NCBI RefSeq assembly: GCF_032444005.1
Contig: NC_091288.1
Coordinates: 218,922,001 to 218,986,000, forward strand
Length of the DNA stretch: 64,000 nucleotides
Direction of reading: 5' to 3'
Origin: Ranitomeya imitator
Lineage: Eukaryota
Shown here piece by piece: positions 29,701-54,455 of the stretch (the first letter of the stretch is position 1; each line of letters opens with the position of its first letter). Both the position numbers and the translations under genes were made by a program. Under the pieces are notes generated by a model. That model did not search any database. It was not told where the DNA came from and saw nothing but the letters and a program-made list of their open reading frames with translations.

Positions 29701-31992
29701 GATCCTGAGCTACATCCTGTATTATACTCCAGAGCTGCACTCACTATTCTGCTGGTTCAGTCACTGTGTACATACATTACATTACTGATCCTGAGCTACA
29801 TCCTGTATTATACCCCAGAGCTGCACTCACTATTCTGCTGGTGCAGTCACTGTGTACATACATTACATTACTGATCCTGAGTTACCTCCTGTATTATACC
29901 CCAGAGCTGCACTCACTATTCTGCTGGTGCAGTCACTGTGTACATACATCACATTACTGATCCTGAGTTACATCCTGTATTATACCCCAGAGCTGCACTC
30001 ACTATTCTGCTGGTGCAGTCACTGTGTACATACATTACATTACTGATCCTGAGCTACATCCTGTATTATACTCCAGAGCTGCGCTCACTATTCTGCTGGT
30101 GCAGTCACTGTGTACATGCATTACATTACTGATCCTGAGCTACATCCTGTATTATACTCCAGAGCTGCACTCACTATTCTGCTGGTTCAGTCACTGTGTA
30201 CATACATTACATTACTGATCCTGAGCTACATCCTGTATTATACCCCAGAGCTGCGCTCACTATTCTGCTGGTGCAGTCACTGTGTACATGCATTACATTA
30301 CTGATCCTGAGCTACATCCTGTATTATACTCCAGAGCAGCACTCACTATTCTGCTGGTTCAGTCACTGTGTACATGCATTACATTACTGATCCTGAGCTA
30401 CATCCTGTATTATACTCCAGAGCTGCACTCACTATTCTGCTGGTTCAGTCACTGTGTACATACATTACATTACTGATCCTGAGTTACATCCTGTATTATA
30501 CCCCAGAGCTGCACTCACTATTCTGCTGGTGCAGTCGCTGTGTACATACATTACTGATCCTGAGTTACATCCTGTATTATACTCCAGAGCTGCACTCACT
30601 ATTCTGCTGGTGCAATCACTGTGTACATACATTACTGATCCTGAGTTACATCCTGTATTATACTCCAGAGCTGCACTCACTATTCTGCTGGTGCAGTCAC
30701 TGCGTACATACATTACATTACTGATTCTGAGTTACATCCTGTATTATACCCTAGAGCTGCACTCACTATTCTGCTGGTGCAGTCACTGTGTACATACATT
30801 ACATTACTGATCCTGAGTTACATCCTGTATTATACTCCAGAGCTGCACTCACTATTCTGCTGGTGCAATCACTGTGTACATACATTACATTACTGATCCT
30901 GAGTTACCTCCTGTATTATACCCCAGAGCTGCACTCACTATTCTGCTGGGGCAGTCACTGTGTACATACATTACATTACTGATCCTGAGTTACATCCTGT
31001 ATTATACTCCAGAGCTGCACTCACTATTCTGCTGGTGCAGTCACTGTGTACATACATTACTGGTCCTGTATTATACCCCAGAGCTGCACTCACTATTCTG
31101 CTGGTGCAGTCACTGTGTACATACATTACATTACTGATCCCGAGTTACCTCCTGTATTATACCCCAGAGCTGCACTCACTATTCTGCTGGTGCAGTCACT
31201 GTGTACATACATTACATTACTGATCCTGAGTTACATCCTGTATTATACCCCAGAGCTGCGCTCAGTATTCTGCTGGTGCAGTCACTGTGTACATACATTA
31301 CATTACTGATCCTGTATTATACTCCAGAGCTGCACTCACTATTCTGCTGGTGCAGTCACTGTGTACACACATTACATTACTGGTCCTGTATGATACTCCA
31401 GAGCTGCACTCACTATTCTGTTGGTGCAGTCACTGTGTACACACATTACATTACTGGTCCTGTATGATACTCCAGAGCTGCACTCACTATTCTGCTGGTG
31501 CAGTCACTGTGTACACACATTACATTACTGGTCCTGTATGATACTCCAGAGCTGCGCTCACTATTCTGCTGGTGGAGGACCCTGGGGCAGCCTCACCTTC
31601 ATCTTGGCGTGTGCCTCGGCGGCTGTGATGATGTTGTGGCCCTTGTGTTTCCCCAGGGAGGCGCACACCCCACAGATCAGCTCCTTGTCCTGCTCGCAGA
31701 AGACGCTCAGCGGGTCCAGGTGCTCCAGGCAATGCCCCTGCGGAACCTGCTTGAAGCTTTGGACGAGATGTTCCAGCTGACGATTGATGTGAAGGGTCTC
31801 AGGCCGGGATGGAGCTTGACAAGTGGGGCAGAGAGTGGAGCCATTTGAGTCCTGGCCCTTGGGGGCCCCGGTCAAGCAGCTTTGGCAGAACGTGTGTCCA
31901 CATTCTGGTGTGACGGGTGATCGGAAGAGTTCTAGACAGAGCTGACAGGTGAGGTCATTCTGCATGCCCTGCACGAGCTGGGGGGTCGCCAT
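17771..31992 (-). CDS. trim72: Tripartite motif protein 72 (MG53), 476 aa. Coding exons: 31992-31597, 26526-26431, 24675-24445, 18768-18746, 18664-18546, 18336-17771.
   Basis: RING (CQLC...CGHTFC...CPTC), B-box ([30 protein letters not shown]), coiled coil and PRY/SPRY domains. TRIM72-diagnostic strings [27 protein letters not shown] and [14 protein letters not shown] are present. All introns are GT-AG, and the exons (396+96+231+23+119+566 = 1431 nt) form an intact frame. Confidence 0.97.
19030..24250. repeat. About 5.2-kb satellite with a 57-bp unit in trim72 coding intron 3
   Basis: Unit ggggtctggaggtcatataggggtctgctgaggacagagtggtgcatggagaataga, about 90 copies. Confidence 0.97.
24693..26261 (-). 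mobile_element. Full-length Tc1 (DD34E) transposon in trim72 coding intron 2
   Basis: TA TSDs at 24691-24692 and 26262-26263. TIRs CACTGCTCAAAAAAATAAAGGGAACACT. The transposase runs 25966-24950 with motifs FTDESRF, QDNARPH and SPDLNPTE, and has 34 residues between the second D and the E. Confidence 0.95.
24950..25966 (-). pseudogene. Tc1 transposase with a single in-frame nonsense codon
   Basis: ORFs 25652-26143 and 24950-25615 share one frame. The only lesion seen is TGA at 25654-25652 (...VRN*LHEDG...). Confidence 0.88.
26560..31570. repeat. About 5-kb satellite with an 86-bp unit in trim72 coding intron 1
   Basis: Unit catcctgtattatactccagagctgcactcactattctgctggtgcagtcactgtgtacatacattacattactgatcctgagtta. 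The ORF track repeats with an 86-bp period. Confidence 0.97.
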
Positions 31993-35625: not shown

Positions 35626-37842
35626 CATCCTGTTAGGAGAAGAAACTGAAGGATCATGCCCTCAAATTATACATCACTGGAAGTAAAGTAGAAAAAAACT
35701 GATGTAGGGATCAACAGTATCGGGAGAATGGTTGGGGATTTTATAATAAAGCAAATTACAAAAAAGATTATGAGTTAAAGATAGATTTGTATCATTTACA
35801 TTTCAGGTATCGGACCACCCCTTTGATGGTTGTGATCTTGTTATGAGGTGATGGTTCCAACAATCAAAAACAGGAGAAAATCTCAGTGGGTTCCATATAC
35901 ATAAGATGGGGCTTCAAACTTACAACATGTAGTGTTGTTTTTTGGGGACTTGTGTAGAGTTGAGCAGAAAATGTTGCGGACCAGGAGCCATGCTGGTAAT
36001 TTGAAGGCACCGGACCACAGTCTCGTGAACCTACTTCTACTTGCCGGAATCTATGATGCCTCTTCTGATTAGTTGGCCCGTGTCCTTATGCATGCACGGC
36101 GCTGCAACTGTGACATTGTTCCAGGCCTACTAATCAGGATATTGCTGGGCATGCTCCAGGAAGGAGGAGGTCTGCAAGAATCTGGTCTGGTGCCCACAGA
36201 TTACTGACGCAGCCACTAGACTAAGACCATACCAACATCTTTGCTCAGCTTAAAATTTATGGATCTGTAGAGGTCATGAGACAACGAGCATTGATAGGTC
36301 TTGGGACATGCCATGGAAAAAGTCAGGAGAGGCAGTCGAGTATGGAACAAATGGCTGTGTATGGTGTCGGAGTATGGCCACGGCTGGGAGCAAGCAGCCT
36401 TCATACTGGGACTTCCCGGTCAGTGGCCATTAGTTCTGACAGCATAGGTTGGTGAATTGGAGACCATAATTTACTGTCATGCCCCCTTTTCATAATAAAG
36501 ACCTTATTGCTCAAGTTGTAGATGTTATTGTACCGATGTTATTGTACCGCTTCTGCTGTGCCAGGTTCAGTAAAGAGGTGACCTTGCGCTTTGCCTTTGA
36601 TGGCACCATCCACTACACCAGGAGTGGGGAACCTCAGGCCCCAGGGCCATTTACGGCCCTCGATGACCTTTTATCAGGCCCCGGAGCAGATTCTCAGGGA
36701 CCGCATTCTTCGGCAGGGAGGTGTATACACACACACGGAAGACAATGGCCCGAGATACTGATGAGAGTAATAGAAGGATTGCTTTACATTTACCTTTGGC
36801 AATCTCCTGTCTGTCCTTCTGTTCTGTATACATAAGATCCAGCCTACACGTCCTCTGCTTGCTGTCACTGAATGGAAACATTGATTCCTGAGCAAGCAAA
36901 TCACTAAAAAAAAAACCACAACAATATCGACGTAACCGGTGCTCCGTGCTGGAAAAACTCTGCGTCCCATAGAGCCGTGAACTCCGCTCTATGTGCGTTG
37001 GTCCAATAGTGACTGAGACTTACAAGGGCTGTGCCTAAACTTTTTGCAAATGACCGATCATACAGCTAGGAAACCTTTTCCATGTAATGGCGTGCTTTAC
37101 ATGGTAGTGGCGAAGGGGTCGAGGAGGACGGAGGCGGTCAGCCCTCACCGTGTGGCGTTACTGACGCTGAGGTGATGCGGTGTCGGTGACCTGTGACCGA
37201 TACCTTGCACCTGACGAGCAGATCTCATCCTGCTGTCCACATTACAGTCACACTTATTCCTTAGCTCCGCAAACTGTAGGCCTCTGTTCACACAGCACGC
37301 ATTTTGTAGCACTGGGCGGCCCGCCTGTACGTGCGTTACTAATAGGCTGTAAACCAGATGCTCTGCATTGCCTGTGTGAACAATGCCACATACAGACTAT
37401 TATCGCTCATCTTTTTGTGCACTAACGCCACACAGCCAACACTGGATTGAAAGTGGTTGTTTCATCGGTATTTTTTGCACCTGTGTTTTTGCCATCATTA
37501 ATCGGGTCTGCTGCGCCCTGATGGTGCATTTGTTTGGAGGCTTCAGCAGGTAAAACATCTCTGCTTTTTTCTCTGTGATTTTTCACACTTATTCCTTCTT
37601 TCCTTCCATGGTTCGCCCCCATAAATAATAGGGCACCGTGTCTGTGCCAACATCTGGATGTGAGTCCTCACAGGGCAGTGTACATGCCAAATACTGAGGT
37701 CTAAGAACCGGTCTGGGCAGTACAACAGCCTCACCGGGTCCAGAACAATTAACCCCCACAGCTTGTCCCCTGCCGAGCTAGAAGATGACGACTAGGAGGA
37801 AGGGATGAGGAAAAGGACAGGAAATGGTGTAAAGTTACTTCC

Positions 37843-37854
37843 ACTTTCAGTTTC
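37843..37854 (+). promoter_or_regulatory. ISRE/IRF-like element just upstream of the PYD exon
   Basis: ACTTTCAGTTTC matches the IRF/ISRE core TTTCNNTTTC and lies 20 bp before the ATG. Confidence 0.5.
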
Positions 37855-37873: not shown

Positions 37874-40800
37874 ATGAGGATGAAGACGGTGAGGGACCTC
37901 CTGCTCCAGGCCCTGGAGAACTTGGAAAATAAATCCTTTAAGAAGTTTAAGAACAAGTTAAATGATTGGGATATAGAGGAGGAATATGCCCGGATCCCGA
38001 GAGGGCCGCTGGAGGTGGCGGACCCCGAGGACGTGGCGGACCTGATCAGACGGTATTACATGGATTCCTATAGCGTGAAGGTAACCGTGGCCGTGCTAGA
38101 AGCCATAAACGAGAACCGTGAGGCGGAGGAGCTGGAGAAAGCCTGGAAGACGGGTAAGAAGCGGAGAATCTGGGAAGAAGATGTTACTATGAGGGACAAT
38201 AGTACAAGGGGGTCCCGGAGGGGGCAGCGGAGCAGACACGGGATGTAGCTCTTAGGCTATGTGCACACGTTCAGGATTTCTCGCAGAAAATTCCTGAGAA
38301 AAACCGGACATTTTCTGCAAGAAAACCTCATGCGTTTTTGCCGCGGTTTTTTCCAGACACTTCCCAGTGCATTTTGTAGTGGGAAATTCGCAAAAAAAAC
38401 ACAAAATTAATGAACATGCTGCGTTTTTTTACCGCGATGCGGTTTTTTTTTTCGCAGAAAAAACGCATCATGTGCACAAAACATGCGAAATTCATTCTAA
38501 ATGATGGGATGCTTATTGTATGCGTTTTTTTTTTGCGGTTTTATAGCATTTTTATCGGGAAAAACCGCGAAAAAACCGCAACGTGTGCACACAGCCTTAG
38601 GCCGGGTTCACGTTAGCGTTATTGTGCGCAGCGTGTGATCCGCATACATCATGCGTACTTATCTTTAAGGCTATGTGCACACGTTGCAGATTATTTGCGG
38701 TTTTCTAGCGTTTTTGCGCTATGAAAACGCTATAAAACCGCAAATAATCTGCATACATTAAGCATCCTATCATTTTTAATGAAATCCGCAATTTCTGTGC
38801 ACATGATGTGCGTTTTTCCGCATGAAAAACGCATTGCGGAAAAATAATGAACCTGCTCATTAATTTTGCGTTTTTTTTTTCGCGGTTTTCCCACTGTCTA
38901 ATGCATTGGGAAATGTCTGGAAAAAAACGCATCAAAACCGCGCAAAAAACGCGCAAAAAAAACGCATGCGGATTTCATGCGGAAATCTGCCAGAAATGTC
39001 CGGAGTTTCACAGGAATTTTCTGCATGAATTCCTGAACGTTTGCACATAGCCTAACATGGTGTACGCAGGGACACGCGTATGCATGCGTCATTTCACGGT
39101 GTGCGGCGGATTCCAGCGAACGCAACATGTTGCATTTTTTGAGGCGTCAAATATTGCGCATGCGGATGAGCGCGTCAAAAAACCGCATTATTGTCTATGG
39201 GAACGCATTGGTACGCAAAGACATGCATACCTTAGACTGCGCATGTCCAGGAAATGATGTCACCACCTCCACCGTGCACGTAAAAAACGCAAACACATTT
39301 TAACGCATGCACACGCAGCGTTGTTTTTTTTTTTTTTTTTGTGTCATGCGTAAGATGATGCGGAGGCGCATGCAGATGACATGCTGCGCACAGAAACGCT
39401 AATGTGAACCTAACCTTAGTAAAGCCATCGTGGTACAGACGATGGAGATGTCACCAGAAGGAAGAAAACGTCTCCAGCAGCGACCCTGAACCTCCGTGTC
39501 CAAGGAACAAAATCAGATAAAGCCTCTGTTCACACGCTGCGCTTTTGCTGCTGCATTTTTTTCACAGGCAAAACCTGCTCTCCCGGCAGTAAAGAAGCTG
39601 CTTACAAAATGCCGATTTTGCAGATTTTTTTGCTGCATTTTTGTTGTCTCTCGTACATGATGATAAAGTTTAGTGCCCCCCTAAAAAAAAAAAAAAAAAA
39701 GTTTAACTTCCTTAGGTTTTTGCGCCAAAGCCTGATCCCTGTGGTTTTTGCTGCGTTTTTGCACTAACCCATTGTTTCCTATGGGTGAAAAAAAACGCGG
39801 AAAGAAGTGACCGCTGCAGTTTTCCGAATCAGTCAGGAAATTAAACCCAATGTGGGGTCATGGGATTTCTGAAATCTCAGGCTTTGCTGGTGCTGTAAAA
39901 AGCAGCTGAAAATTTGCATTAAAAAAAAAGGATGCAAAAACGCCCAGTGTGAACATAGCCTTATCTATACAACAAATCAATATTCTGACTATGACCCGAT
40001 CTGTGTGCCAAATCCGGGACCTGGCTACTTATCAGGAGAGCCGGGGCTCGGTGTTATCAGTGTATACACTACATCACATATACAGTGATGGTTAAAGGGG
40101 ATGTCCCCGCTGAAAAAACTCCTGCAGGCTCAGATACATGTAGAAAACATAATCTGAGCTTTACTTACCCTCCCCTGGTCCAGCACAGGACACTACTGGG
40201 CTGCAGCCAATCACTCAGCACAGCACCGTAGCTCAGTAATTGGCTGCAGCGCTACTGACGTGATTTCACCGCTGCAGCCAAACAAAAGAATGCAACTTGT
40301 TAATTCTCACCTGACTTCTGCGGAGAGTCCAGTCATCTGCATTCAGATTTTTTACATAAACTTTTTTTTTTACATATTTTTTTTACCCGTAGAGCGGACG
40401 TGCGTCATCAGTACATGAAGCGGGCTGTGTTACACAGATGGCACCTGAGAGCGACAGCTGCAGAGCTGGGTCTGATCGCAACCAAGCGACAGCTGCAGAG
40501 CTGGGTCTGATCGCAACCAAGCGACAGCTGCAGAGCTGGATCTGATCGCAACCAAGCGACAGCTGCAGAGCTGGGTCTGATCGCAACCAAGCGACAGCTG
40601 CAGAGCTGGGTCTGATCCCAACCAAGCAACAGCTGCAGAGCTGGGTCTGATCCCAACCAAGCGACAGCTGCAGAGCTGGGTCTGATCGCAACCAAGCGAC
40701 AGCTGCAGAGCTGGGTCTGATCGCAACCAAGCGACAGCTGCAGAGCTGGGTCTGATCCCAACCAAGCGACAGCTGCAGAGCTGGGTCTGATCGCAACCAA

Positions 40801-43800
40801 GCGACAGCTGCAGAGCTGGGTCTGATCCCAACCAAGCGACAGCTGCAGAGCTGGGTCTGATCCCAACCAAGCGACAGCTGCAGAGCTGGGTCTGATCGCA
40901 ACCAAGCGACAGCTGCAGAGCTGGGTCTGATCCCAACCAAGCGACAGCTGCAGAGCTGGGTCTGATCCCAACCAAGCGACAGCTGCAGAGCTGGGTCTGA
41001 TCGCAACCAAGCGACAGCTGCAGAGCTGGGTCTGATCGCAACCAAGCGACAGCTGCAGAGCTGGGTCTGATCCCAACCAAGCGACAGCTGCAGAGCTGGG
41101 TCTGATCGCAACCAAGCGACAGCTGCAGAGCTGGGTCTGATCCCAACCAAGTGACAGCTGCAGAGCTGGGTCTGATCCCAACCAAGCGACAGCTGCAGAG
41201 CTGGGTCTGATCGCAACCAAGCGACAGCTGCAGAGCTGGGTCTGATCCCAACCAAGCGACAGCTGCAGAGCTGGGTTTGATCCCAACCAAGCGACAGCTG
41301 CAGAGCTGGGTCTGATCGCAACCAAGCGACAGCTGCAGATAAAGGCCTAAAAAATAATACGGACAACCATAAAGAATAAAAAGTGTTCATTTTTCGGTTG
41401 GTCAGGCTTCGTGGGAACTTGTTTTTTTTTGCCACTGATCTGACTTTTTTATTGATACCGTTCTCATCTAGATACAATGTTTCTTATTGCACTTTTTGCG
41501 GAGTTGCGTTTTTTTCCTTAGCGGTCAGGTTAATTAATTTGATGAGGAGATATCAAACGTTTAATTTTTTTTGGTTTATTTTAAATGAGGGGGAAGAATA
41601 CTTTTTTTTTTTTTTTAACTTTTTTTTGTTCACTTTATTTGTGAAATCTCAGCCTGTGATCGTCAGATGGATTGTACCATATACCGCAATACTATAGTAA
41701 GAATAATCGTGGAGTCTTATGAACACCAGTCATAGGTTGGTCTTCATAGAAGCACGGGGGTCTTCATAGAAGCACGGGGGTCTTCCTCTGGGGCCACCTG
41801 GAGGTCCTATATTTACAGTCGGAGCATGCGGATTCATTCTGGGCATAAACATGGGCAATGCCGGTTTATACTACGGATAATGCGCACTTTCTCTGTCCGG
41901 ACAGTAGAGGGCAGGCGCGCGTCGTACTGACTTCATTGTGATTGCCTCCTCTGTTACCCTATCATCATGGAAATGATCAGATCAGGAGCCGCTGGGGTCT
42001 TTCTGCACTGTTGTGTGGACACTGTGGTCAGCAGTTATCAAAAATGGCGTAACCTGCTCCGTTATTACTTACTAAAGAGAATCCGTCAGCAGGTTTTTGC
42101 TATGTAATCAGAGAGCAGCATGATAGAGGGGCAGCATTTATATTGTGAGGGCATCAATCCGCAATTGGGCACTGAAAGAAAAGGTGAAAGGGTGTTTGCT
42201 GGAACAATCGCCACCATGGACAGGACCACATCTCCTGTACTCCATGGGCAAGCAGGGGCAACAAACCGCAAAATCTTGGATGCAAACGCAATGATGATTG
42301 ATGGTCTTCTATCTGCAGAAACGAGTTCAGAAACTGCTGGCTGTTCTCCTGATCTCTAAATCGCTCAGTTTTCCTCTCTTTTGACTGTTATAGAATGTTT
42401 CTCCTACTTCAGTGCTATAAAAGCTTTCGGAAACTTTACAGTTTTTGATCCTTTTGAATTCAGATGGAAGGAAATTTATTTTTTACAAGTGTTCAAGAGA
42501 GTTCATGGGTAATGTAGAACGAGAGTCACGTGACAGGTTCTGGAGGAAAAAGACAAAAGAACCGCAGAGGTCGAAAGGGACCGAAAAAGTAGGCCGTCAA
42601 AACAAGAAGAAGGCACGCTTATAGAAAATATCACACTTGTGCAAATTGGGGGAAAAAGTGGAAAAACCCTTATTATAGGTGGAACATTGACTCACAGGGC
42701 AGTGTCGCTGCACATAAGGTTTCTTCCTTCTGGTAGAGAGCTAGTTTGCATACTTTTCTTCCAGAAATTATTATTTCTTCAAGAAAAACCTAGTATACCC
42801 CGATATATGCAGTCCTATGTAAGGCACAAAGTATTCCCAATAGAGTAGAGATCACAGTACTGGCGTATGAGCACGGCTTCAGCATCTTCCTCCATAGTCG
42901 TGAGCGATGACCAGTCCTGGACTCATCTCAGGGATTCTGTTTTTTTGTGTTTTTCAGTGAATTGTTGTACAACCAAGAGAGAAGATCAAGGAGCAACATC
43001 GAGAGGTGAGCAGTCCAAGAGAGAAGACCAAGGAGCAACATCGAGAGTTGAGCAGTCCAAGAGAGAAGACCAAGGAGCAACATCGAGAGGTGAGCAGCCG
43101 GAGAGAGAAGACCAAGGATCAACATCGAGAGGTGAGCAGTCCAAGAGAGAAGAGCAAGGAGCAACATCAAGAGGTGAGCAGTCCAAGAGAGAAGACCAAG
43201 GAGCAACATCGAGAGGTGACCAATCCAAGAGAGAAGATTAAGGAGCAACATCAAGAGGTGAGCAGTCCAAGAGAGAAGACGAAGGAGCAACATCGAGAGG
43301 TGAGCGGTGGCCTGGAGCCTCCTCACTATAGGTCCGAGGCCTTGATATAATCCAATAGAAAGAATGTTCTGCTTGAAATCCCGAATGTGTGTATATAGCC
43401 TTAACCCCGGTCCTGTGTCCTCCCTACACGCATACACGTTCATTGTAAGTCCCTGATAGCGCCATTATGAATTGGGGGGGAGTGGTATATGACTTTAACA
43501 GGGTCTTATGATGAAATAGGGGATGGGAGAGGATGCTATCAGGTACTTAGAAAAATTTAGACCTGGGCCCCCACCTGCATGTTGGCCAGATATATAAGCC
43601 CTCGAAGCGTTCTAGATCCTATAAAGACATATGTGTTCACCCCCATATAATTATGCTCCTAATCCTAGTCCCCTTCTTAGTATAATGTCCGACATCCTAG
43701 GCCCCTTCTTAGTATAATGTCCTCCACCTGGGCCCTTTTATGGAATATTGTCCCCCAACCTGGCCCCTTCTTAGTATATTATAATGTCCTCCACCTGGGC

Positions 43801-44420
43801 CCCTTCATGGAATATTGTCCCCCATCCTGGGCCCCTTCATACCCTAAGGTATTGAATACAATTATTTAAAAAAAAGAAAAATATAGATAGAATTTCTCTA
43901 AAACGAACATGAGATGCTCTACTCATCACAATGTAACATTACAGCCCTCCATGTCTGGACTCACCGCTTCTCTTCATTTTGATCTTTTATTTCAGCACCG
44001 ATTCAGGAAACATCTCGGGGAGCGACATGCTGAGGTGAGAGGAGGAGGAGGAGAGGCTCCTTGTAAATCGTATCAGTCTCATCGAATAGTGAAGTCACTC
44101 ATATAGGTGACTGTCGGGGACGGAGGACGATCATTAATCTCATAGCTTCTGTTCTCATTACAGATCAGGAGCATTTTGTGGACAGACATCGCGCTCAGCT
44201 GATACAGCGGGTGCATCTTCTGGGCCAAGTCCTGGACGACCTCCTTCAGAACAAGCTGCTGACATATGAAGGCTACAACACCGTGCTCAGCATGAAACCC
44301 TCCCAGCAGCAGATGCGAGAGCTCTACCGATACATGTCATCCTGGGGGAATAAAGACAAGGATAAGTTCCTGCAATCTCTGAAGACACACTACGCTCCGC
44401 TCATCAAGACTCTGGAGTAG
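37874..44420 (+). CDS. pycard: PYCARD/ASC-like gene: PYD exon 37874-38153, candidate linker exons 42464-42508, 42958-43005 and 43996-44034 (stop-containing), CARD exon 44164-44420
   Basis: PYD: MKTVRDLLLQALENL...FKKFKNKL...RIPRGPL...DLI...Y, ending in phase 1 at a GTAAG donor (38154). CARD: EHFVDRHRAQLIQRV...MRELY...LE*, after a phase-1 acceptor at 44162-44163. The gene is divergent from trim72, as human PYCARD and TRIM72 are. Linker exon usage is inferred. Confidence 0.85.
38255..39415. mobile_element. Cluster of PIF/Harbinger-type MITEs: 38255-38596, then 38600-39415 with 38669-39052 nested inside it
   Basis: TIRs GGCTATGTGCACACG and GGCCGGGTTCAC with 3-bp TTA/TAA target duplications. Confidence 0.8.
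39521..39960. mobile_element. PIF/Harbinger-type MITE
   Basis: agcctctgttcacac...gtgtgaacatagcc, flanked by TAA and TTA. Confidence 0.65.
40455..41338. repeat. 35-bp minisatellite in pycard intron 1
   Basis: Unit gcgacagctgcagagctgggtctgatcgcaaccaa. Confidence 0.95.
42972..43305 (+). repeat. 42-bp tandem repeat (8 units) spanning the exon 3' end and splice donor of a pycard linker exon
   Basis: The unit encodes GEQSKREDQGATSR. GAG|GTGAG donors recur every 42 bp. Confidence 0.9.
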
Positions 44421-44530
44421 ACTGAACTGCCTCACATCATGAGTGGAGCGTCAGCTCCTGGGGTCAGTCCTGTAGCTGCAGCTATGGAGGAGGGGATGTG
44501 TCCTTCATCATTCTTTTATACGTAAAAACA

Positions 44531-44536
44531 AATAAA
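44531..44536 (+). terminator. Candidate polyadenylation signal after the first CARD exon
   Basis: AATAAA 110 nt after the TAG. Confidence 0.55.
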
Positions 44537-44639
44537 AAATCTGGTACCGAATTTATAAATGGTTTTCTATCATTTTTTGAATATGAAAACGCTAACATGA
44601 AATAGTCCCGGGCTACAGAAAAATAGTCCGAAGCTACAG

Positions 44640-45670
44640 TCGCTGTGACCAGTGGGGTACCGCAGGGGTCAGTATTGGGACCTGTTCTCTTCAACATATT
44701 CATTAATGATCTGGTAGAAGGTTTACACAGTAAAATATCGATATTTGCAGATGATACAAAACTATGTAAAGCAGTTAATACAAGAGAAGATCGTATTCTG
44801 CTACAGATGGATCTGGATAAGTTGGAAACTTGGGCTGAAAGGTGGCAGATGAGGTTTAACAATGATAAATGTAAGGTTATACACATGGGAAGAGGGAATC
44901 AATATCACCATTACACACTGAACGGGAAACCACTGGGTAAATCTGACAGGGAGAAGGACTTGGGGATCCTAGTTAATTATAAACTTACCTGGAGCAGCCA
45001 GTGCCAGGCAGCAGCTGCCAAGGCAAACAGGATCATGGGGTGCATTAAAAGAGGTCTGGATACACATGATGAGAGCATTATACTGCCTCTGTACAAATCC
45101 CTAGTTAGACCGCACATGGAGTACTGTGTCCAGTTTTGGGCACCGGTGCTCAGGAAGGATATAATGGAACTAGAGAGAGTACAAAGGAGGGCAACAAAAT
45201 TAATAAAGGGGATGGGAGAACTACAATACCCAGATAGATTAGCGAAATTAGGATTATTTAGTCTAGAAAAAAGACGACTGAGGGGCGATCTAATAACCAT
45301 GTATAAGTATATAAGGGGACAATACAAATATCTCGCTGAGGATCTGTTTATACCAAGGAAGGTGACGGGCACAAGGGGGCATTCTTTGCGTCTGGAGGAG
45401 AGAAGGTTTTTCCACCAACATAGAAGAGGATTCTTTACTGTTAGGGCAGTGAGAATCTGGAATTGCTTGCCTGAGGAGGTGGTGATGGCGAACTCAGTCG
45501 AGGGGTTCAAGAGAGGCCTGGATGTCTTCCTGGAGCAGAACAATATTGTATCATACAATTATTAGGTTCTGTAGAAGGACGTAGATCTGGGTATTTATTA
45601 TGATGGAATATAGGCTGAACTGGATGGACAAATGTCTTTTTTCGGCCTTACTAACTATGTTACTATGTTA
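44640..45670 (+). mobile_element. 5'-truncated CR1 LINE: RT C-terminus (ORF 44645-45565) plus 3' UTR
   Basis: Motifs SGVPQGSVLGPVLFNIFINDL, FADDTKL, LGLFSLEKRRLRGDLI and RGHSLRL. The element ends in a short tandem tail (actatgttactatgtta). Confidence 0.93.
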
Positions 45671-48030
45671 CAGGAAAATAGTCTCAGGCTACAGAAAAAT
45701 AGTAAGAGGCTACAGGAAAATAGTCTCAGGCTACAGGAAAATAGTCCAAGAAGCTACAGGAAAATAGTCCGAGGCTACAGGAAAATAGTCCGAGGCTACA
45801 GGAAAATAGTCAGAGGCTACAGAAAAATAGAGGCTACAGGAAAATAGCCACAGGCTACAGGAAAATAGTTTGAGGCTACAGAAAAATAGTCTGAGGCTAC
45901 AGAAAAATAGAGGCTAGTAGTCAGAAGCTACAGGAAAATAGTCCAAGGCTACAGGAAAATAGTCGAGGCTACAGGAAAATAGTCTGAGGCTACAGGAAAA
46001 TAGTCTGAGGCTACAGAAATATAGTCTGAGGCTACAGAAAAATAGAGGCTACAGGAAAATAGTCAGAAGCTGCAGGAAAATAATCCGAGGCTACAGGGAA
46101 ATAGTCGAGGCTACAGGAAAATAGTCTCAGGCTACTTGAAAATAGATTCAGGTTGCAAGAAAATAGTCCCAGGCTACAGGAAAATAGTCGAGACTACAGG
46201 AAAATAGTCTCAGGGTACAGGGAAATAGTCCAAGGCTACAGGGAAATAGTCAAGACTACAGGAAAATAGTCACAGGCTACAGGAAAATAGTCTGAGGCTA
46301 CAGGAAAATAGTCTCAGGCTACTGGAAAATAGTCTCGGGCTACAGGAAAATAGTCTCGGGCTACAGGAAAATAGTCTCGGGCTACAGGAAAATAGTCTCA
46401 GGCTACAGGAAAATAGTCTCAAGCTACTGGATAATAGACTCAGGTTGCAAGAAAATAGTCCCAGGCTACGGGAAAATAGTCGAGACTACAGGAAAATAGT
46501 CTCAGGCTACAGGGAAATACTCCGAGGCTACAGAAAAATAGTCTCAGGCTACTGGAAAATAGTCCCAGGCTACAGGAAGATAGTCTCGGGCTACAGGAAA
46601 ATAGTCTCAGGCTACAGGAAAATAGTCTCAGGCTACAGGAAAATAGTCTCGGGCTACAGGAAAATTGTCAAGGCTACAGAAAAATAGTACGAAGCTACAG
46701 GAAAATAGTCCGAGGCTACAGGAAAATAGTCTCGGGCAACAGGAAAATAGTCTCGGGCTACAGGAAAATAGTCTCGGGCTACAGGAAAATAGTCTCGGGC
46801 TACAGGAAAATAGTCTCGGGCTACAGGAAAATAGTCTCGGGCTACAGGAAAATAGTCCCAGGCTACAGGAAAATAGTCCCAGGCTACAGGAAGATAGTCT
46901 CGGGCTACAGGAAAATAGTCTCAGGCTACAGGAAAATAGTCTCAGGCTACAGGAAAATAGTCTCGGGCTACAGGAAAATTGTCAAGGCTACAGGAAAATA
47001 GTACGAAGCTACAGGAAAATAGTCCGAGGCTACAGGAAAATAGTCTCGGGCAACAGGAAAATAGTCTCGGGCTACAGGAAAATAGTCTCGGGCTACAGGA
47101 AAATAGTCTCGGGCTACAGGAAAATAGTCTCGGGCTACAGGAAAATAGTCTCGGGCTACAGGAAAATAGTCTCGGGCTACAGGAAAATAGTCTCGGGCTA
47201 CAGGAAAATAGTCCCAGGCTACAGGAAAATAGTCTCGGGCTACAGGAAAATAGTCTCGGGCTACAGGAAAATAGTCTCGGGCTACAGGAAAATAGACCCT
47301 GGCTACAGGAAAATAGTCCCAGGCTACAGGAAAATAGTCCCAGGCTACAGGAAAATAGTCCCAGGCTACAGGAAAATAGTCTCGGGCTACAGGAAAATAG
47401 TCTCGGGCTACAGGAAAATAGTCCCAGGCTACAGGAAAATAGTCCCAGGCTACAGGAAAATAGTCTCAGGCTACAGGAAAATAGTCTCGGGCTACAGGAA
47501 AATAGTCTCGGGCTACAGGAAAATAGTCTCAGGCTACAGGAAAATAGTCTCGGGCTACAGGAAAATTGTCAAGGCTACAGAAAAATAGTACGAAGCTACA
47601 GGAAAATAGTCCGAGGCTACAGGAAAATAGTCTCGGGCAACAGGAAAATAGTCTCGGGCTACAGGAAAATAGTCTCGGGCTACAGGAAAATAGTCTCGGG
47701 CTACAGGAAAATAGTCTCGGGCTACAGGAAAATAGTCCCAGGCTACAGGAAAATAGTCCCAGGCTACAGGAAAATAGTCTCGGGCTACAGGAAAATAGTC
47801 TCGGGCTACAGGAAAATAGTCTCGGGCTACAGGAAAATAGACCCTGGCTACAGGAAAATAGTCCCAGGCTACAGGAAAATAGTCCCAGGCTACAGGAAAA
47901 TAGTCCCGGGCTACAGGAAAATAGAGGCTACAGGAAAATAGTTCCAGGCTACAGGAAAATAGAGGCTACAGGAAAATAGTTTCAGGTTGCAAGAAAATAG
48001 TCCCAGACTACAGGAAAATAGTCCCAGGCT
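45671..48030. repeat. 21-bp satellite, about 2.35 kb
   Basis: Unit ggctacaggaaaatagtctcg. Two further units lie 5' of the CR1 at about 44600-44639. Confidence 0.95.
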
Positions 48031-48635
48031 TGACACGCATTCTTTGTGTCAGTCCACTCATGACCAATAGACACGGCCAGAAGTGTCTTTCCTGGGCCAA
48101 GGAGAAGAAGAACTGGACTGTTGTCAGTGGTCCAAGGTGTTGTTTTTCATTTGGAAATCAAGGTCCCAGAGTCTGGAGGAAGAGTGGAGAGGCCACAATC
48201 CAAGCTGCTGGAGGTCTAGTGTGAAGTCTCCACAATCGGTGATGGTTTGGGGAGCCATGTCATCTGCTGGTGTAGGTCCACTGTGTTTTATCAAGACGAA
48301 AGTCAGCGCAGCCGTCTACCAGGACATTGTAGAGCACTTCATGCTTCCCTCTGCCGACAAGCTTTTTGGAGATGGAAATGTCATTCTCCAGCAGGACTTG
48401 GCCCCTGTCCACACTGCCAAAAGTACCAATACCTGGTGTAAAAACAACAGTATCACTGGGCTTGATTGGCAGCAAACTCGCCTGACCTTAACCCCATAGA
48501 GAATCTATGGAGTATTGTCAAGAGGAAGATGAGAGACTCCAGACCCAACAATGCAGACGAGCTGAAGGCTGCTATCAAAGCAACCTGGGCTTCCATAACC
48601 CCTCAGCAGCGCCACAGGCTGATCGCCTCCATGCG
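48030..48635 (+). mobile_element. Internal fragment of a Tc1 transposase, frameshifted, no TIRs
   Basis: Motifs PQSVMVWGAMS, LQQDLAPVHTAK and NSPDLNPIENLWSIVKRKM. Confidence 0.88.
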
Positions 48636-48839
48636 GCTAGAAATGAAAAGCAGACAATACAGCTCTTTTGCATATAAAGAAAACATGGATTTCTCTGGAA
48701 AAAAGATAATAGATGGCAGTTATGAAGGTATCATTTTCTTCAGCTTCCTATGACCTGCGTGCACATATAGATGGCTAGTCCTACTGACAAATCCCCTTTA
48801 TATGTGGCTGTCAATCTCTGACAGTGGCACTTGCTGTAT

Positions 48840-50990
48840 GTATGCTTTGAGGTTGGTTCTGTTGCTCTATGTTATGAGCTTAGTTCTTGTACTGTATTTA
48901 TGTTTTAAGCTTGGTTCTGGTGCTGTGTTTCTGATTTGAGGTTGGTTCTGTTGCTGTGCTTTAATTATGAGCTTAGTTCTTGTACTGTATTTATGTTTTA
49001 AGCTTGGTTCTGGTGCTTTATTTCTGATTTGAGGCTGGTTCTGTTGCTCTATTTATGTCATGAGCTTAGTTATTGTACTGTATTTATGTTTTAAGCTTGG
49101 TTCTGGTTCTGTGTTTCTGTTTTGAGCTTGGCTCTGTTGTATTTCTGTTTTGATCTTGGTTCCGTTGCTGTAATTCTGTTTGCAGCATGGTTCTGGGGCT
49201 GTGTTTCTGATTTGAGGTTGGTTCTGTTGCTATACTTATGTTATGAGCTTAGTTCTTGTACTGTATTTATGTTTTAAGCTTGGTTCTGGTGCTGTATTTC
49301 TGATTTGAGGTTGGTTCTGTTGCTCTATGTTATGATCTTAGGTCTTGTACTGTATTTATGTTTTAAGCTTGGTTCTGGTGCTGTATTTCTGATTTGAGGT
49401 TGGTTCTGTTGCTATACTTATGCTATGATCTTAGTTCTTGTACTGTATTTATGTTTTAAGCTTGGTTCTGGTGCTGTATTTCTGATTTGAGGTTGGTTTT
49501 GTTGCTGTGCTTTAATTATGAGCTTAGTTCTTGTACTGAATTTATGTTTTAAGCTTGGTTCTGGTGCTTTATTTCTGATTTGAGGCTGGTTCTGTTGCTC
49601 TATTTATGTCATGAGCTTAGTTATTGTACTGTATTTATGTTTTAAGCTTGTTTCTGGTGCTGTGTTTCTGTTTTGAGCTTGGCTCTGTTGTATTTCTCTT
49701 TTGATCTTGGTTCTGGTGCTGTAATTCTGTTTGCAGCATGGTTCTGGGGCTCTGTTTCTGATTTGAGGTTGGTTCTGTTGCTATACTTATGTTATGATCT
49801 TAGTTCTTGTACTGTATTTATGTTTTAAGCTTGGTTCTGATGCTGTACTTCTGATTTGAGGTTGGTTTTGTTGCTGTGCTTTAGTTATGAGCTTAGTTCT
49901 TGTACTGTATTTATGTTTTAAGCTTGGTTCTGGTGCTGTATTTCTGATTTGAGGTTGGTTCTGTTGCTCTATGTTATGATCTTAGGTCTTGTACTGTATT
50001 TATGTTTTAAGCTTGGTTCTGGTGCTGTATTTCTGAATTGAGCTTGGCTCTGTTGTATTTCTGTTTTGATCTTGGTTCCGTTGCTGTATTTCTGTTTTGA
50101 TCTTGGTTCTGGTGCTGTAATTCTGTTTGCAGCATGGTTCTGGGGCTGTGTTTCTGATTTGAGGTTGGTTCTGTTGCTATACTTATGTTATGAGCTTAGT
50201 TCTTGTACTGTATTTATGTTTTAAGCTTGGTTCTGATGCTGTACTTCTGATTTGAGGTTGGTTTTGTTGCTGTGCTTTAGTTATGAGCTTAGTTCTTGTA
50301 CTGTATTTATGTTTTAAGCTTGGTTCTGGTGCTGTATTTCTGATTTGAGGTTGGTTCTGTTGCTCTATGTTATGATCTTAGGTCTTGTACTGTATTTATG
50401 TTTTAAGCTTGGTTCTGGTGCTGTATTTCTGAATTGAGGTTGGTTCTGTTGCTCTATGTTATGATCTTAGGTCTTGTACTGTATTTATGTTTTAAGCTTG
50501 GTTCTGGTGCTGTATTTCTGATTTGAGCTTGGCTCTGTTGTATTTCTGTTTTGATCTTGGTTCCGTTGCTGTATTTACGTTTTGATCTTGGTTCTGGTGC
50601 TGTAATTCTGTTTGCAGCATGGTTCTGGGGCTGTGTTTCTGATTTGAGGTTGGTTCTGTTGCTATACTTATGTTATGAGCTTAGTTCTTGTACTGTATTT
50701 ATGTTTTAAGCTTGGTTCTGGTGCTGTATTTCTGATTTGAGGTTGGTTCTGTTGCTCTATGTTATGATCTTAGGTCTTGTACTGTATTTATGTTTTAAGC
50801 TTGGTTCTGGTGCTGTATTTCTGATTTGAGCTTGGCTCTGTTGTATTTCTGTTTTGATCTTGGTTCCATTGCTGTATTTACGTTTTGATCTTGGTTCTGG
50901 TGCTGTAATTCTGTTTGCAGCATGGTCTGGGGCTGTGTTTCTGATTTGAGATTGGTTCTGTTGTTGTATATACGATATGAGCTTGGTCCT
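48840..50990. repeat. T-rich complex satellite, about 30-bp subunits in higher-order blocks
   Basis: Recurrent gcttggttctggtgctgtatttctgatttgag and cttagttcttgtactgtatttatgtttta units. Confidence 0.92.
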
Positions 50991-51252
50991 CGTGCTATAT
51001 TTTATTCATACAGCTATGGAGACAGAAATATAAAAAGGTTATGGCTCTTGGAACAAGAAGAAGAAAAATTGAAAGCGGAAAAATTGAAAGCGCAAAAATG
51101 AAATACCCTGGATTTTTAAGGGGTTAACGGTGTGAGCACGAAGATCACATGAAGATGAAAGAAAGAGAGGACAAGTACGCGCTGCCTGCAAATAAGAAGC
51201 TCCGGCAGCGGGAGAGTTAATACACGTTCCCGCCACTTTAGTTCCAATAGTC

Positions 51253-51264
51253 ACTTTCAGTTTC
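51253..51264 (+). promoter_or_regulatory. ISRE/IRF-like element upstream of the CARD-only first exon
   Basis: ACTTTCAGTTTC, identical to the motif at 37843, about 90 bp before the ATG at 51356. Confidence 0.5.
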
Positions 51265-51355
51265 TAGGTCTTCTCCTTTCCTGGTTTCTGCAGGAAATAC
51301 TACAACCCGAGCATAGGACGGCGAACGCATTCTACGTGCGGAGGACCCTCCAGAC

Positions 51356-53537
51356 ATGGCCGGTAAGTGCACAAAGTTCCTGCATCCAGCAGTCCGTGTC
51401 TGTTGATGGACTAATACTTGTATCTAGGGAATGCCACATAGTACAGCTCAGTCAGCATATATTTATGCACAACATAGCACAGAAAATTTTTTCTCTATAC
51501 TATGTTGTGCATAAATATGTGATTCTTCAGAATTTCTTTTAGTCTTTGCCTGATGAAGAGACCTGTGTAGTCTCGAAAGCTGCAATTTGTTACCATCTTT
51601 TCAGTTAGCCATTAAAAAGGTATCAACCACTGAGGACTCTCAATTCCAAATATTTTTTTGTACAAAAATACACATCCCTGTATATATAGTGTACGGTACA
51701 TACACTAAAAGCCTAAGAAAAACTAGAACGGGGCTCTAGAACCGGAGAACCATGCTCAACTCAAAGGTGAGCAAAAATGCTGTGACTTTTGGATTTTTCA
51801 CACAAGCCCCCGGTCAGATCAACCAAAGTGAGGAGCGCATGAGCAGGATGGGACGGAGCAAAGACCACCCAACAAATTCTTCAAAAGTTACTCCACTTTG
51901 ATAATAAAACGGAGCGCACCATAGTGTAATACTGTTAAGGTGAAGAGAAAAAAAAACATAAGTGTAAACTAACCCTATGTACAGTTGTGCTCAAAAGTTT
52001 ACACACCCCGGAAGAATTTTTGCTTTCTTGGCCTTTTTGTCAGAGGATATGAATGATAACACCAAAACCTTTCCTCCACTCATGGTCAGTGGTTGGGTGA
52101 AGCAATTTATTGTCAAACTACTGTGTTTTCTCTTTTTATCATAACGACATCCTACAGCTCTGCTCTGCTCCAGTCCCTCATCCTGCGGCTCTGCTCCCCT
52201 CCCGCATACTGCGGCTCTGCTCTCGTCCCACATCCTGCGGCTCTGCTCTGCTCTGCTCCCGTCCCGCATCCTGCGGGTCTGCTCCTCTCCCGCATCCTGC
52301 GGCTCTGCTCTCCTCCAGTCCCGCACCCTGCAGCTCTGCTCTGCTCACGTCCTGCGGCTCTGCTCTCCTCCAGTCCTGCACCCTGCAGCTCTGCTCTGCT
52401 CCCGTCCCGCATCCTGCAGCTCTGCTCTGCTCCCGTCCCGCAACCTGCAGCTCTGCTCTGCTCCCGTCCCGCATCCTGCGGCTCTGCTCTGCTCCCGTCC
52501 CGCATCCTGCAGCTCTGCTCTCCTCCAGTCCTGCACCCTGCAGCTCTGCTCTGCTCATGTCCTGCATCCTGCAGCTCTGCTCTGCTCACGTCCTGCATCC
52601 TGCGGCTCTGCTCTCCTCCAGTCCCGCACCCTGCAGCTCTGCTCTACTCACATCCTGCGGCTCTGCTCTCCTCCAGTCCTGCACCCTGCAGCTCTGCTCT
52701 GCTCCCGTCCCGCATCCTGCAGCTCTGCTCTGCTCCCGTCCCACATCCTGCGGTTCTGCTCTGCTCCTGTCCTACATCCTGCGGCTCTGCTCCATTGATA
52801 ACTCATTAAGTAGCGCGCCTCATCTTATTACTACATGCCCATCAGTAAGACTTAACGAGCCCAACGTGTTTGTTGTCTGTTACCATGGAGACACATTGTT
52901 TGTGGTCTGTTACCGTGGAGACACATCCAAGCATATAAAATCTGCATCAAATCCGCTGGGTGTGCATGTGGCTCATAGCGTGAGGAGGCAGAGGAGCAGT
53001 CAGCCTCAGAATGCACAGGATGTGGTGTCAGACAACCTCACACTCCAGACAATGCAGTGAGGCCGGAGTCATTGATCATAGCGGAGTCCTAAAGGCACAG
53101 ACCTTGGCCTATACCAGAGACAACAAATTGCAGGCAAGAATTCCATAATTCATCAGGAAAGCACAATTATCTTATTATTTCCATGAAAGGTCTTTAGCGG
53201 CAGAGATGACAGAGTTATTACTGTCACACGAGGGAAACAGATTTGACAATATTTTCCAATTGCAGGAATTACAGATAAGGAGCATTTTGTGGACAGACAT
53301 CGCGTCGCACTGATAGGACGGGTGGTTTTGGTGGATCCGATCCTCGATGATCTCCGTCAGTGGAGGCTGCTGACAGGTGAACACTACGACACGGTGCGAA
53401 GCAAGACGACCTCACAGGAGAAGATGCGAGAGCTCTACCGTCACGTGGATTCCTGGGGAAATAAAGACAAGGATTGCTTCCTGCAATCTCTGAAGAAAAA
53501 TAACCCGCCACTCGTCAGGGATCTAGAAAGGGACTAA
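51356..53537 (+). CDS. CARD-only protein with an ASC-type CARD, about 89 aa: exon 51356-51362 (ATGGCCG) plus exon 53275-53537 (alternative acceptor at 53266 adds 3 aa)
   Basis: cagacATGGCCG|GTAAGT has a good Kozak context and a consensus phase-1 donor. It joins ttacAG|AT AAG GAG CAT to give MADKEHFVDRHRVALIGRV...MRELY...LVRDLERD*. This CARD is 53/85 identical to the first CARD by manual alignment. Confidence 0.72.
51543..51612 (+). ncRNA. Candidate minimal hammerhead ribozyme in a Penelope-like repeat remnant
   Basis: CTGATGA (51550-51556), stem II GAGAC/GTCTC (51558-51574) and GAAA (51575-51578). Stems I and III are only weakly paired. Confidence 0.5.
51980..52140. mobile_element. Tc1-like terminal fragment
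   Basis: TA followed by CAGTTGTGCTCAAAAGTTTACACACCCC, a Tc1-type TIR start with no partner. Confidence 0.65.
52150..52795. repeat. CT-rich minisatellite, about 26-31-bp unit
   Basis: Repeated ctctgctctgctcccgtcccgcatcctgcag-like units. Confidence 0.9.
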
Positions 53538-54032
53538 AGCCTGAAGGACACTGGCTGGAGCTCGGCTAGAGAGTCAGCTCCTGGGATCAGCGTCGTGTAG
53601 CTGCGGTTGTGGACGGTGTTGTGTCGTTCAGCGCTTGTCCATGTTCATCATCATTGAGGTTCACGACCTTTTTGAAATGTCTAGATTGTAAATGTATAAT
53701 CCTAGTCTGGGGAGAGTAGTCTTTACACCGTACAGTCATATGATGTGGAAAATCACAGGTGATTTCATCATTACACCAGTGTAAAATGACCACATAAAAG
53801 CCAAAAACTGAGGCAAAAAACATGAACATTAATATAAAATTAACAAAAAGGCTCAATGAAAAATGTTGTTTTGTACAAATCCAGTCAATATATGGATGGA
53901 AGAATCTTTGTTTTGTGCTTCGGACCGATCTCTGAGGACGTCCCGCTCCATTTCCACTGCGTGGTCAGACACAGATTCTCCTGCTTATCACAGGTGATCA
54001 CCGGGGACCAGAAACGCCAATCCTGTCTGTGG

Positions 54033-54038
54033 AATAAA
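54033..54038 (+). terminator. Candidate polyadenylation signal of the CARD-only unit
   Basis: AATAAA about 500 nt after the TAA. Confidence 0.4.
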
Positions 54039-54040
54039 CG

Positions 54041-54455
54041 CAGTCAAATAAATAAGGCAGCACAACTGCGGCGCTAAAACATGAAACATGAAAATTGAAC
54101 TGCATTACTGCTCTGGAAATATGAAAAAATGAGAGCGTTTAGCTAATAAATTGGCCAATTCATGTGTACCTGGTAGCCACATTATGGCATCTCTCGTATA
54201 CCAGGTCCTAGACTTTCCTTTCCTCGCTGAGAATAAACGTCTTCATCTGAATGGGTACCTGTGAAACCTCTTCTCAGCGAGGAAAGGAAAGTGTAGGACC
54301 TGGTATACGAGAGATGCCCTAATGTGGCTACCAGGTACACATGAATTGGCCAATTTATGAGCTAAACGCTCTCATTTTTTCATATTTCTAGCGCAGTAAT
54401 GCAGTACAATTTTCATGTTTTAGCACCGCAGTGTGCTGCCTTATTTATTTGACTG
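54041..54455. repeat. 415-bp fold-back inverted repeat (MITE-like)
   Basis: Arms of about 190 bp (cagtcaaataaataaggcagcac... / ...gtgctgccttatttatttgactg) around a short loop. Confidence 0.88.

Follow-up and report, generated by a model that had tools for sequence, protein, structure and literature searches.

The 64,000 nucleotides of Ranitomeya imitator DNA analysed here (contig NC_091288.1, positions 218,922,001 to 218,986,000 of the forward strand; this stretch is the window, numbered from its first base) carry a second gene for an ASC-type CARD, on the same strand as the ASC gene pycard and about 7 kb downstream of it. It is a real, separately transcribed gene of two exons, and its product consists of little besides the CARD. 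We consider it likely that this CARD-only gene, derived from pycard, is functional and that its product modulates the recruitment of caspase-1. The existence of the gene is secure and its origin is partly resolved. The gene model is already public; its interpretation as a CARD-only gene appears to be new, and no description of an amphibian ASC-derived CARD-only protein was found in the open literature. CARD1 denotes below the CARD exon of pycard and CARD2 that of the CARD-only gene.

The CARD-only transcript

Expression was assessed from public RNA runs of R. imitator, which contain about one quarter of the sampled words of 51200-53700; four runs were examined over 51000-54400. Three of these, from three different studies (runs X1, X2 and X18), hold one contig each (751, 850 and 1088 nt) in which position 51362 is joined to 53266. 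The contigs start at 51267 (X1), 51293 (X2) and 51250 (X18), and none of the three shows an exon upstream of 51250-51293; at the other end they extend to 53920-54241. In the fourth run the contig begins within exon 2. Exon 1 (51250-51362) thus comprises a 5' untranslated region (UTR) and a 7-nt coding micro-exon, ATGGCCG (51356-51362), that abuts a GTAAGT donor. The micro-exon ATG is the first in the transcript and lies in the context cagacATGG, with A at -3 and G at +4; the 13-mer formed by micro-exon and donor, ATGGCYGGTAAGT, occurs once in the window. Intron 1 (51363-53265, 1903 nt, GT..AG) contains a 31-nt tandem array (52148-52792) and interspersed repeats. The coding part of exon 2 occupies 53266-53537, with a TAA stop at 53535-53537, and the 3' UTR of the main isoform runs from 53538 to 54070. 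Polyadenylation signals of the form AATAAA at 54033-54038 and 54047-54052 fit the contig ends at 54045 (X2) and 54075 (X9).

The acceptor in use, 53266 (ttgcag/GAATTACAG), lies 9 nt upstream of the ancestral acceptor (attacag/AT). The old acceptor has therefore been exonised, and the product has 92 residues rather than 89. Exon 2 opens with the nine exonised bases, GAATTACAG, and continues into the ASC-type CARD; the mRNA reads ATGGCCG followed by GAATTACAGATAAG and encodes MAGITDKEHF...LERD. The sequence-only reading, made before any transcript was consulted, had predicted the micro-exon with its donor, and the spliced contigs from three studies confirm it. Its CARD-only product also stands, but not the acceptor at 53275 nor the 89-residue protein (MADKEHF...) that this acceptor would give: the junction seen is 51362 to 53266, which the same reading had listed as the alternative, and 51362 to 53275 was not seen.

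The window, a second assembly and the RNA contigs all preserve the open reading frame of 92 residues; H62Y and K79N are the sole coding changes that the contigs show. In the second assembly, a GenBank 'unnamed protein product' of 92 residues (P0001) is 98% identical to the CARD-only product, differs from it at exactly these two residues, and is encoded about 6 kb downstream of a 278-residue PYRIN+CARD gene.

Public annotation contains a different view of the same exon, namely that CARD2 is mainly a downstream exon of pycard (PYD-CARD1-CARD2 or PYD-CARD2) and that the 92-residue gene is minor or artefactual. The RefSeq protein XP_069591770.1 of R. imitator ('pyrin-like', 404 residues, P0154), to whose C-terminal 91 residues CARD2 of the window is 100% identical, chains PYD, repeats, CARD1 and CARD2; the RefSeq ASC of Phyllobates terribilis (XP_073502338.1, 296 residues) has a similar chain, PYD-CARD1-'GITD'-CARD2. 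Both models enter CARD2 through the same acceptor, and phase-1 compatibility extends to the PYD exon, the micro-exon and both CARD exons. However, CARD1 ends in a stop codon of its own, which an AATAAA follows about 110 nt downstream, and the R. imitator fusion requires a weak donor (GA/GTAGAC, the GT lying inside GAGTAG at the CARD1 stop codon, which it overlaps) together with a cryptic coding exon, 52159-52277, inside the 31-nt tandem array. Neither this exon nor the fusion has support in the RNA contigs of the four runs. The PYD exon is joined from 38153 to 42958 in all four runs, and 43299 is next joined to 43996 (stretch 38100-44099); no contig of these runs has any other junction from 38153, none joins 38153 or anything in 52100-52300 to 53266, and every contig that reaches 53266 comes from 51362. 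The junctions 38153 to 53266, 44416 to 52159 and 52277 to 53266 are each missing from these contigs, which rare isoforms can escape. The sequence-only reading had allowed that CARD2 might also serve as an alternative last exon for the PYD exon, and no contig of the four runs supports this. A minor read-through form may exist, but the dominant form in the RNA data is the separate two-exon gene, and we judge a mainly pycard-borne CARD2 to be very unlikely.

At the 5' end of the CARD-only transcript lies a 13-mer resembling an interferon-stimulated response element (ISRE), GAAACTGAAAGTG, on the reverse strand at 51252-51264. The pycard ATG has an identical 13-mer 20 nt upstream (37842-37854), again on the reverse strand. 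These are the only two matches in the 64 kb at up to one mismatch, where 0.15 would be expected and 3 of 100 shuffled sequences reach two. The ISRE-like motif that had been noted at the micro-exon is accordingly present, with an exact copy beside the start of pycard. As a motif match, this shared 13-mer suggests co-regulation of the two genes, possibly by interferon regulatory factors. The micro-exon ATG of the Mantella CARD-only gene (see below) has, about 63 nt upstream, an ISRE-like GAAACAGAAAGTAA of the same orientation. E. (Eleutherodactylus) coqui has an ISRE-like GAAAACTGAAAGT about 35 nt upstream of the ATG, on the forward strand.

A longer 3' UTR isoform enters an inverted repeat at 54084-54420, whose 150-nt arms (54084-54233 and 54271-54420) are 96% complementary and enclose a 37-nt loop. 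The X18 contig, which reaches 54241, has 16 differences between 54093 and 54210, all of them A>G. Such a cluster in a 3' UTR inverted repeat may be the signature of ADAR hyper-editing; alternatively, the contig may come from a paralogous copy of the repeat.

Domain type, age and selection

Against Pfam PF00619, CARD2 scores 81.4 bits where the cut-off is 23.9 (E 4.8e-23), and the match spans positions 2-84 of the 85 in the profile. With 28 amphibian CARDs as input, AlphaFold2 gives a model whose predicted local distance difference test score is 87.4; the first five residues are of low confidence and the remainder is a CARD. DSSP assigns seven helical segments between residues 10 and 91, of which 10-13 and 15-21 are read as the kinked helix 1 typical of the fold. 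The top Foldseek matches are all CARDs (template modelling (TM) score 0.82-0.94). The best is the human ASC-CARD filament subunit 6N1H (TM 0.93, root-mean-square deviation 1.0 Å, 44% identity), and the caspase-1 CARD ranks 19th with 23% identity. A phmmer search of the PDB gives E-values of about 1e-16 for ASC CARDs, level with the 1.8e-16 of one NLRP1-family CARD and ahead of human NLRP1 (5e-12), NLRC4 (1e-4) and CARD8 (1.5e-3); caspase-1 gives no PDB sequence match to CARD2 at E<0.01. In trees CARD2 nests among amphibian ASC CARDs. Over 64 consensus positions drawn from seven canonical non-hyloid amphibian ASC CARDs, CARD2 agrees at 51 and CARD1 at 44; a third ASC-like CARD of R. imitator (P0152, described below) agrees at 35.

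The DNA tells the same story. A tblastn search finds two CARD exons in the window, at 44157-44417 and 53268-53534, and CARD2 lies 9 kb downstream of the pycard CARD exon on the same strand. The two domains are identical at 53 of 85 residues. By blastn, 44157-44507 aligns with 53268-53630 at 72.8% over 367 nt; the homology extends from 7 nt upstream of the old acceptor to some 90 nt after both stop codons, the 3' UTR stretch 53538-53630 being homologous to 44421-44507 of pycard. On the pycard side the paralogous block (44164-44507) is thus the CARD1 exon with the first 90 nt or so of its 3' UTR. Nothing further aligns between the two loci except unrelated tandem repeats, and a tblastn search with the PYD has its sole match in the window at 37874-38152, with no second PYD there or in intron 1. 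A duplication of the whole gene that left recognisable PYD or promoter DNA is rejected, the blastn match being confined to the CARD exon and proximal 3' UTR.

On these points the sequence-only reading fared well: its 53 of 85 identical residues are reproduced exactly, the similarity does run into the 3' UTR, the only PYD exon is that of pycard, and its view of CARD2 as an ASC-type CARD, at least as ASC-like as CARD1, agrees with the database scores, the 6N1H match and the consensus count. The ASC origin of CARD2 is settled by sequence, by fold and by nucleotide homology to the neighbouring pycard exon. Sequence, fold and synteny lead us to reject an origin from caspase-1, CARD8 or NLRP1; although the NLRP1 CARD is similar, it is not the neighbour here. 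The product is nevertheless not an ASC adaptor, which has PYD and CARD in one polypeptide, as its transcript holds the micro-exon and the CARD exon only.

An exhaustive search of representative proteins returned 740 relatives, and a word-indexed protein search 4; many of the 740 have several tandem ASC-type CARDs in one model. The most informative is in Mantella aurantiaca, a member of the Ranoidea (KAM5153181.1, 94 residues, start MADSRHF). At that locus (L003), a 192-residue PYRIN+CARD gene ends at 1357 and the CARD-only gene occupies 10001-13942, on the same strand and 8.6 kb on. Its first exon, ATGGCTG/GTAAGT, shares 12 of the 13 bases of the Ranitomeya 13-mer; we estimate the chance of such a recurrence in an equivalent 8.6-kb spacer at about 0.001. 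In Hyla sarda, XP_056392816.1 (89 residues, start MADVEHF) has the very architecture that the sequence-only reading had predicted for Ranitomeya, and two more short CARD entries adjoin it. The orthologous CARD2 of Phyllobates is 85% identical, and a 134-residue entry of Bufo gargarizans is also among the relatives. P0001 is the same gene as the one described here, and the Hyla sarda and Mantella entries are likely orthologues, with an MA[DG] start and a single ASC-type CARD; all three are automatic annotations, named 'ASC' or unnamed, and no account that treats them as a CARD-only class was found.

Other frogs show how readily such exons multiply or combine. RefSeq models with eight tandem ASC-type CARDs in Dendropsophus ebraccatus (P0005) and four in Leptodactylus fuscus (P0010) suggest either that ASC-CARD exons stand in large tandem arrays in these hyloids or that the annotator joined up chains of CARD-only genes. 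Hyperolius has CARD-CARD-RING proteins that start MAGRRHF. No RING exon lies downstream of the CARD-only gene in the window or in Mantella L003; on that ground we reject that it is part of a longer gene of the CARD-RING kind seen in Hyperolius and Rana. E. coqui has two genes of about 90% identity (L001 414-6209 and L002 10001-15603) that encode an MAG start, a PYD with its middle, about helices 3-5, deleted (47 residues; its first 25 residues, then its end) and then an ASC-type CARD; no full PYD was found in the E. coqui DNA examined around them. Mantella L003 gives a further sign of local CARD-exon copying: between its pycard and its CARD-only gene, at 5895-6107, is part of one more CARD exon, which is close to the CARD of Mantella pycard.

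Because the micro-exon and the synteny are common to Ranoidea and Hyloidea, we infer that the gene is old, a paralogue derived from pycard in early neobatrachian frogs. Later, in early hyloids, its CARD exon with the proximal 3' UTR would have been homogenised with that of pycard, or one of the two would have been copied anew from the other. Conversion or a small re-duplication of this kind would account for the sharp 365-nt homology block, and is the more likely source of the similarity between CARD1 and CARD2 within hyloid frogs. Phylogeny gives a lower bound for the split. Ranitomeya and Phyllobates CARD2 form a clade (support 98-99/95-96), as do their CARD1s (99-100/97), so CARD1 and CARD2 separated before these two genera did; the synonymous divergence (dS) between CARD1 and CARD2, about 0.5, is similar to that between Ranitomeya and E. 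coqui (0.5-0.8). The ratio of non-synonymous to synonymous divergence (dN/dS) of CARD2 is 0.20-0.23 against Mantella and 0.29-0.50 against E. coqui, and CARD2 is under purifying selection. The ratio of about 1, with disabling mutations in relatives, that had been set down as refuting the sequence-only reading is not seen, and the reading frame is intact in every copy examined.

Several observations weigh against an old and functional gene. The evidence of expression consists of assembled contigs, not raw reads. Both coding polymorphisms are non-synonymous, and dN/dS between CARD1 and CARD2 is about 0.55. Local alignments of the exon-1 region with the pycard 5' region, with Mantella and with E. 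coqui do not rise above shuffled controls, save for a 14-nt CATGGCYGGTAAGT; an identity of about 63% that MAFFT gives over the 50 nt upstream in Ranitomeya and Mantella is not counted. The CARD tree does not unite the hyloid and ranoid CARD-only domains, and forcing the MA[DG]-type CARDs together costs 21 log-likelihood units (approximately unbiased test, p=0.043), so that one ancient clade of CARD-only domains is not recovered and is marginally rejected. Since the tree keeps the two groups apart, a single origin needs the later gene conversion.

The tree could also be explained by a recent duplication, in hyloids or dendrobatids, of a single exon that captured a chance ATG-plus-donor, the Mantella and Hyla genes being independent. 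All hyloid CARDs, PYD-linked and CARD-only alike, form one clade (95-96/89) with the Mantella CARD-only domain outside, the homology block is sharp-ended and includes 3' UTR, and hyloid ASC-type CARD exons are prone to tandem copying, as the Dendropsophus and Leptodactylus models illustrate. Against this, chance would have had to place 12 of 13 bases of micro-exon and donor at the equivalent position and on the same strand in Ranitomeya and Mantella, the Hyla protein likewise starts MAD, and the split between CARD1 and CARD2 is older than the divergence of Ranitomeya and Phyllobates. We hold a recent origin to be unlikely, and retain the old gene with later conversion or re-duplication. The sequence-only reading had described an independently evolved, ASC-derived CARD-only gene in amphibians; the ASC-derived amphibian gene stands, but it is not a local novelty made by one recent exon copy, given that Mantella shares the arrangement and that Hyla and Ranitomeya both have MAD/MAG proteins.

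The gene could also be a remnant that is transcribed yet has no function, for instance a duplicate of pycard in decay. It does lie amid tandem repeats and transposon debris, and its two coding polymorphisms are non-synonymous with no synonymous one beside them. Yet the reading frame has survived in all copies, dN/dS stays at 0.2-0.5 over long distances, micro-exon and donor are conserved, and CARD2 is nearer to the canonical consensus than the PYD-linked CARD1. This makes decay extremely unlikely, and we continue with a gene that is maintained.

The pycard transcript and the surrounding locus

The PYD exon of pycard (37874-38153, forward strand; Pfam PYRIN E 1.3e-20) ends in phase 1, and its CARD exon occupies 44164-44420 on the same strand, with a TAG stop at 44418-44420 (Pfam CARD E 5.8e-17). 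Between them lies a linker exon (42958-43299) composed of a 42-nt (14-residue) tandem array of about eight units, each ending in a donor-like GAG/GTGAGC. One unit has an in-frame TAA (43239-43241) in this assembly; the four RNA runs read C at 43238 and 43239 (GAC CAA), and the protein of the other assembly has Q at this position. The TAA may reflect haplotype variation or an error of assembly; another possibility is that contigs from other units were cross-placed here. A junction from 43047 to 43996 that lacks GT is probably an artefact of repeat collapse.

The linker is followed in RNA contigs by a 39-nt exon (43996-44034), with the junction 43299 to 43996 in three runs at a depth similar to that of the PYD junction. 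This exon has a strong donor, GAG/GTGAGA, and an in-frame TGA (44031-44033) 3 nt before its end; if that donor is used, the main pycard product would end before CARD1. RefSeq evades the TGA by means of a GC donor at 44028, the GenBank model omits the exon, and Phyllobates reads ...GATSR at this point, without a stop. With this exon in the dominant transcript, and if its GT donor is used, the R. imitator locus may represent a split ASC, in which a PYD-plus-repeat protein and a separate CARD protein take the place of one adaptor. The strongest form of this idea, that neobatrachian frogs have kept an ASC-CARD-only gene, with a fixed micro-exon and a shared ISRE-like element, for probably more than 100 million years and that R. 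imitator has in addition split its ASC, seems to us improbable. If true, sensor docking and caspase recruitment would be uncoupled, and the ASC-type CARD would come mainly from the CARD-only gene.

A third ASC-like gene (P0152, 206 residues, PYD+CARD, RefSeq 'ASC') lies on the same 711-kb contig, outside the window; its CARD is very divergent and forms a long branch. Its presence there points to a small pycard family in R. imitator.

Tandem repeats and transposon debris surround both CARD exons. Between pycard and the CARD-only gene, the spacer (45669-51002) is made up almost entirely of two satellite-like arrays, one with 114 units of 21 nt and the other with 71 units of 31 nt, and a reverse-transcriptase fragment of a long interspersed nuclear element lies at about 44640-45560. 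Upstream of pycard, on the reverse strand, is the RING-finger exon of a TRIM-like gene (31750-31965). In Hyla sarda a RING-B-box-PRY-SPRY gene overlaps the CARD-only cluster on the opposite strand.

Proposed role and comparison with known regulators

To predict the behaviour of the protein, CARD2 was aligned to human ASC and compared with published mutants. Filaments or specks of the ASC CARD are abolished by D134K, R125E, D143K/E144K and mutants of the E130-E144-R160 network (PMC12658066), and by N128A/E130R and Y187A (PMC4854733). CARD2 retains R125, an acidic residue at 130, D134, E144, R160 and W169 (human numbering); CARD1 has G at 130 and L at 150. Since residues of the filament are mostly kept, CARD2 should be able to join ASC-type CARD assemblies. 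A further point that counts against a working CARD is that CARD2 differs at human N128, D143, N170 and Y187 (L, G, G and P); the differences at 128, 170 and 187 are common to canonical frog ASC CARDs.

We propose that the shared ISRE-like element probably induces the CARD-only gene together with pycard and that the 92-residue protein would co-polymerise with ASC, caspase-1 and NLRP1-type CARDs. Having no PYD, it would not be recruited by PYD sensors. The net effect would most likely be a modulation of caspase-1 recruitment, in which the protein competes for the CARD surfaces of caspase-1 and ASC away from PYD-nucleated specks, like the mammalian isoform ASC-c and the CARD-only proteins. Inhibition may be placed slightly ahead of activation.

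The activating alternative is a PYD-less adaptor or nucleator: a free CARD, seeded by CARD sensors of the NLRP1 or NLRC4 type, that nucleates caspase-1 CARD filaments. With it, frogs would have an amplifier, or a way to caspase-1 that does not depend on the PYD. In humans, the NLRP1 CARD seeds the ASC CARD and needs ASC, the NLRC4 CARD can seed, and CARD-only constructs suffice (PMC7794362). CARD2 retains most of the residues whose mutation breaks the ASC CARD filament, an NLRP1-family CARD equals ASC as its best PDB sequence match, and it is the most canonical of the three R. imitator ASC-type CARDs. On the other hand, speck-scale amplification would be lost without cross-linking by the PYD, and the mammalian isoform ASC-c, which consists of little more than a CARD and so is close to the ASC CARD alone, forms filaments and binds caspase-1 but lowers the release of interleukin-1β (PMC2887861). 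We regard an adaptor role as possible, though less probable than not, and favour the modulation of caspase-1 recruitment.

To our knowledge, the control of amphibian inflammasomes is almost unstudied. It appears that the CARD-only inflammasome regulators of primates have a counterpart in frogs, derived from ASC. An expressed and conserved gene of this kind, if the reading is right, would mean that the same way of regulation had an independent origin, in the other member of the CARD-CARD pair. The protein would also be a natural 'ASC CARD alone' with which to study the effects of a free ASC CARD on speck formation and caspase-1 activation. A systematic problem of annotation would be exposed too, as the CARD-only genes are named 'ASC' or fused into pycard models.

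Single-domain regulators of the inflammasome, the CARD-only proteins (COPs) and PYD-only proteins (POPs), have been described as restricted to humans and higher primates (PMC7555848). The frog protein resembles CARD16 (COP), CARD17 (INCA) and CARD18 (ICEBERG) in being small and CARD-only and, by analogy, in acting at the ASC/caspase-1 CARD platform. These three, however, are derived from caspase-1 and lie in the inflammatory caspase cluster, and have been reported only in humans and higher primates (PMC7555848), whereas the frog gene is anuran, derived from ASC and placed beside pycard. By descent and location it is not a member of the COP family, although it plausibly works like one.

ASC-c is, like the frog protein, effectively an ASC CARD without a working PYD, and co-localises with caspase-1 and not with NLRP3 (PMC2887861). 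Of the known systems it offers the best model for the function of the frog protein. It differs in arising by alternative splicing of PYCARD and in retaining the linker and a PYD fragment; the frog protein has its own promoter and gene and no PYD residues. The E. coqui genes, with a PYD fragment before the CARD, are nearer to ASC-c than the frog CARD-only protein is, and amount to a hard-wired equivalent of it.

A close parallel in origin is POP1 (PYDC1), a copy of the ASC PYD beside PYCARD that is 64% identical to it (PMC7555848). Both are single death-fold domains of about 90 residues, encoded close to PYCARD and thought to be copied from an ASC exon; the frog CARD is 62% identical to the neighbouring ASC CARD, and adjacency to pycard is found in Mantella as well as in Ranitomeya. 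They differ in that POP1 is a PYD in primates and the frog protein a CARD with its own 7-nt start micro-exon, whose partners would be CARDs (caspase-1, ASC, NLRP1/NLRC4) and not PYDs. Beside the primate COPs and POP1, the frog gene is the missing fourth combination: a copy of the ASC CARD next to pycard.

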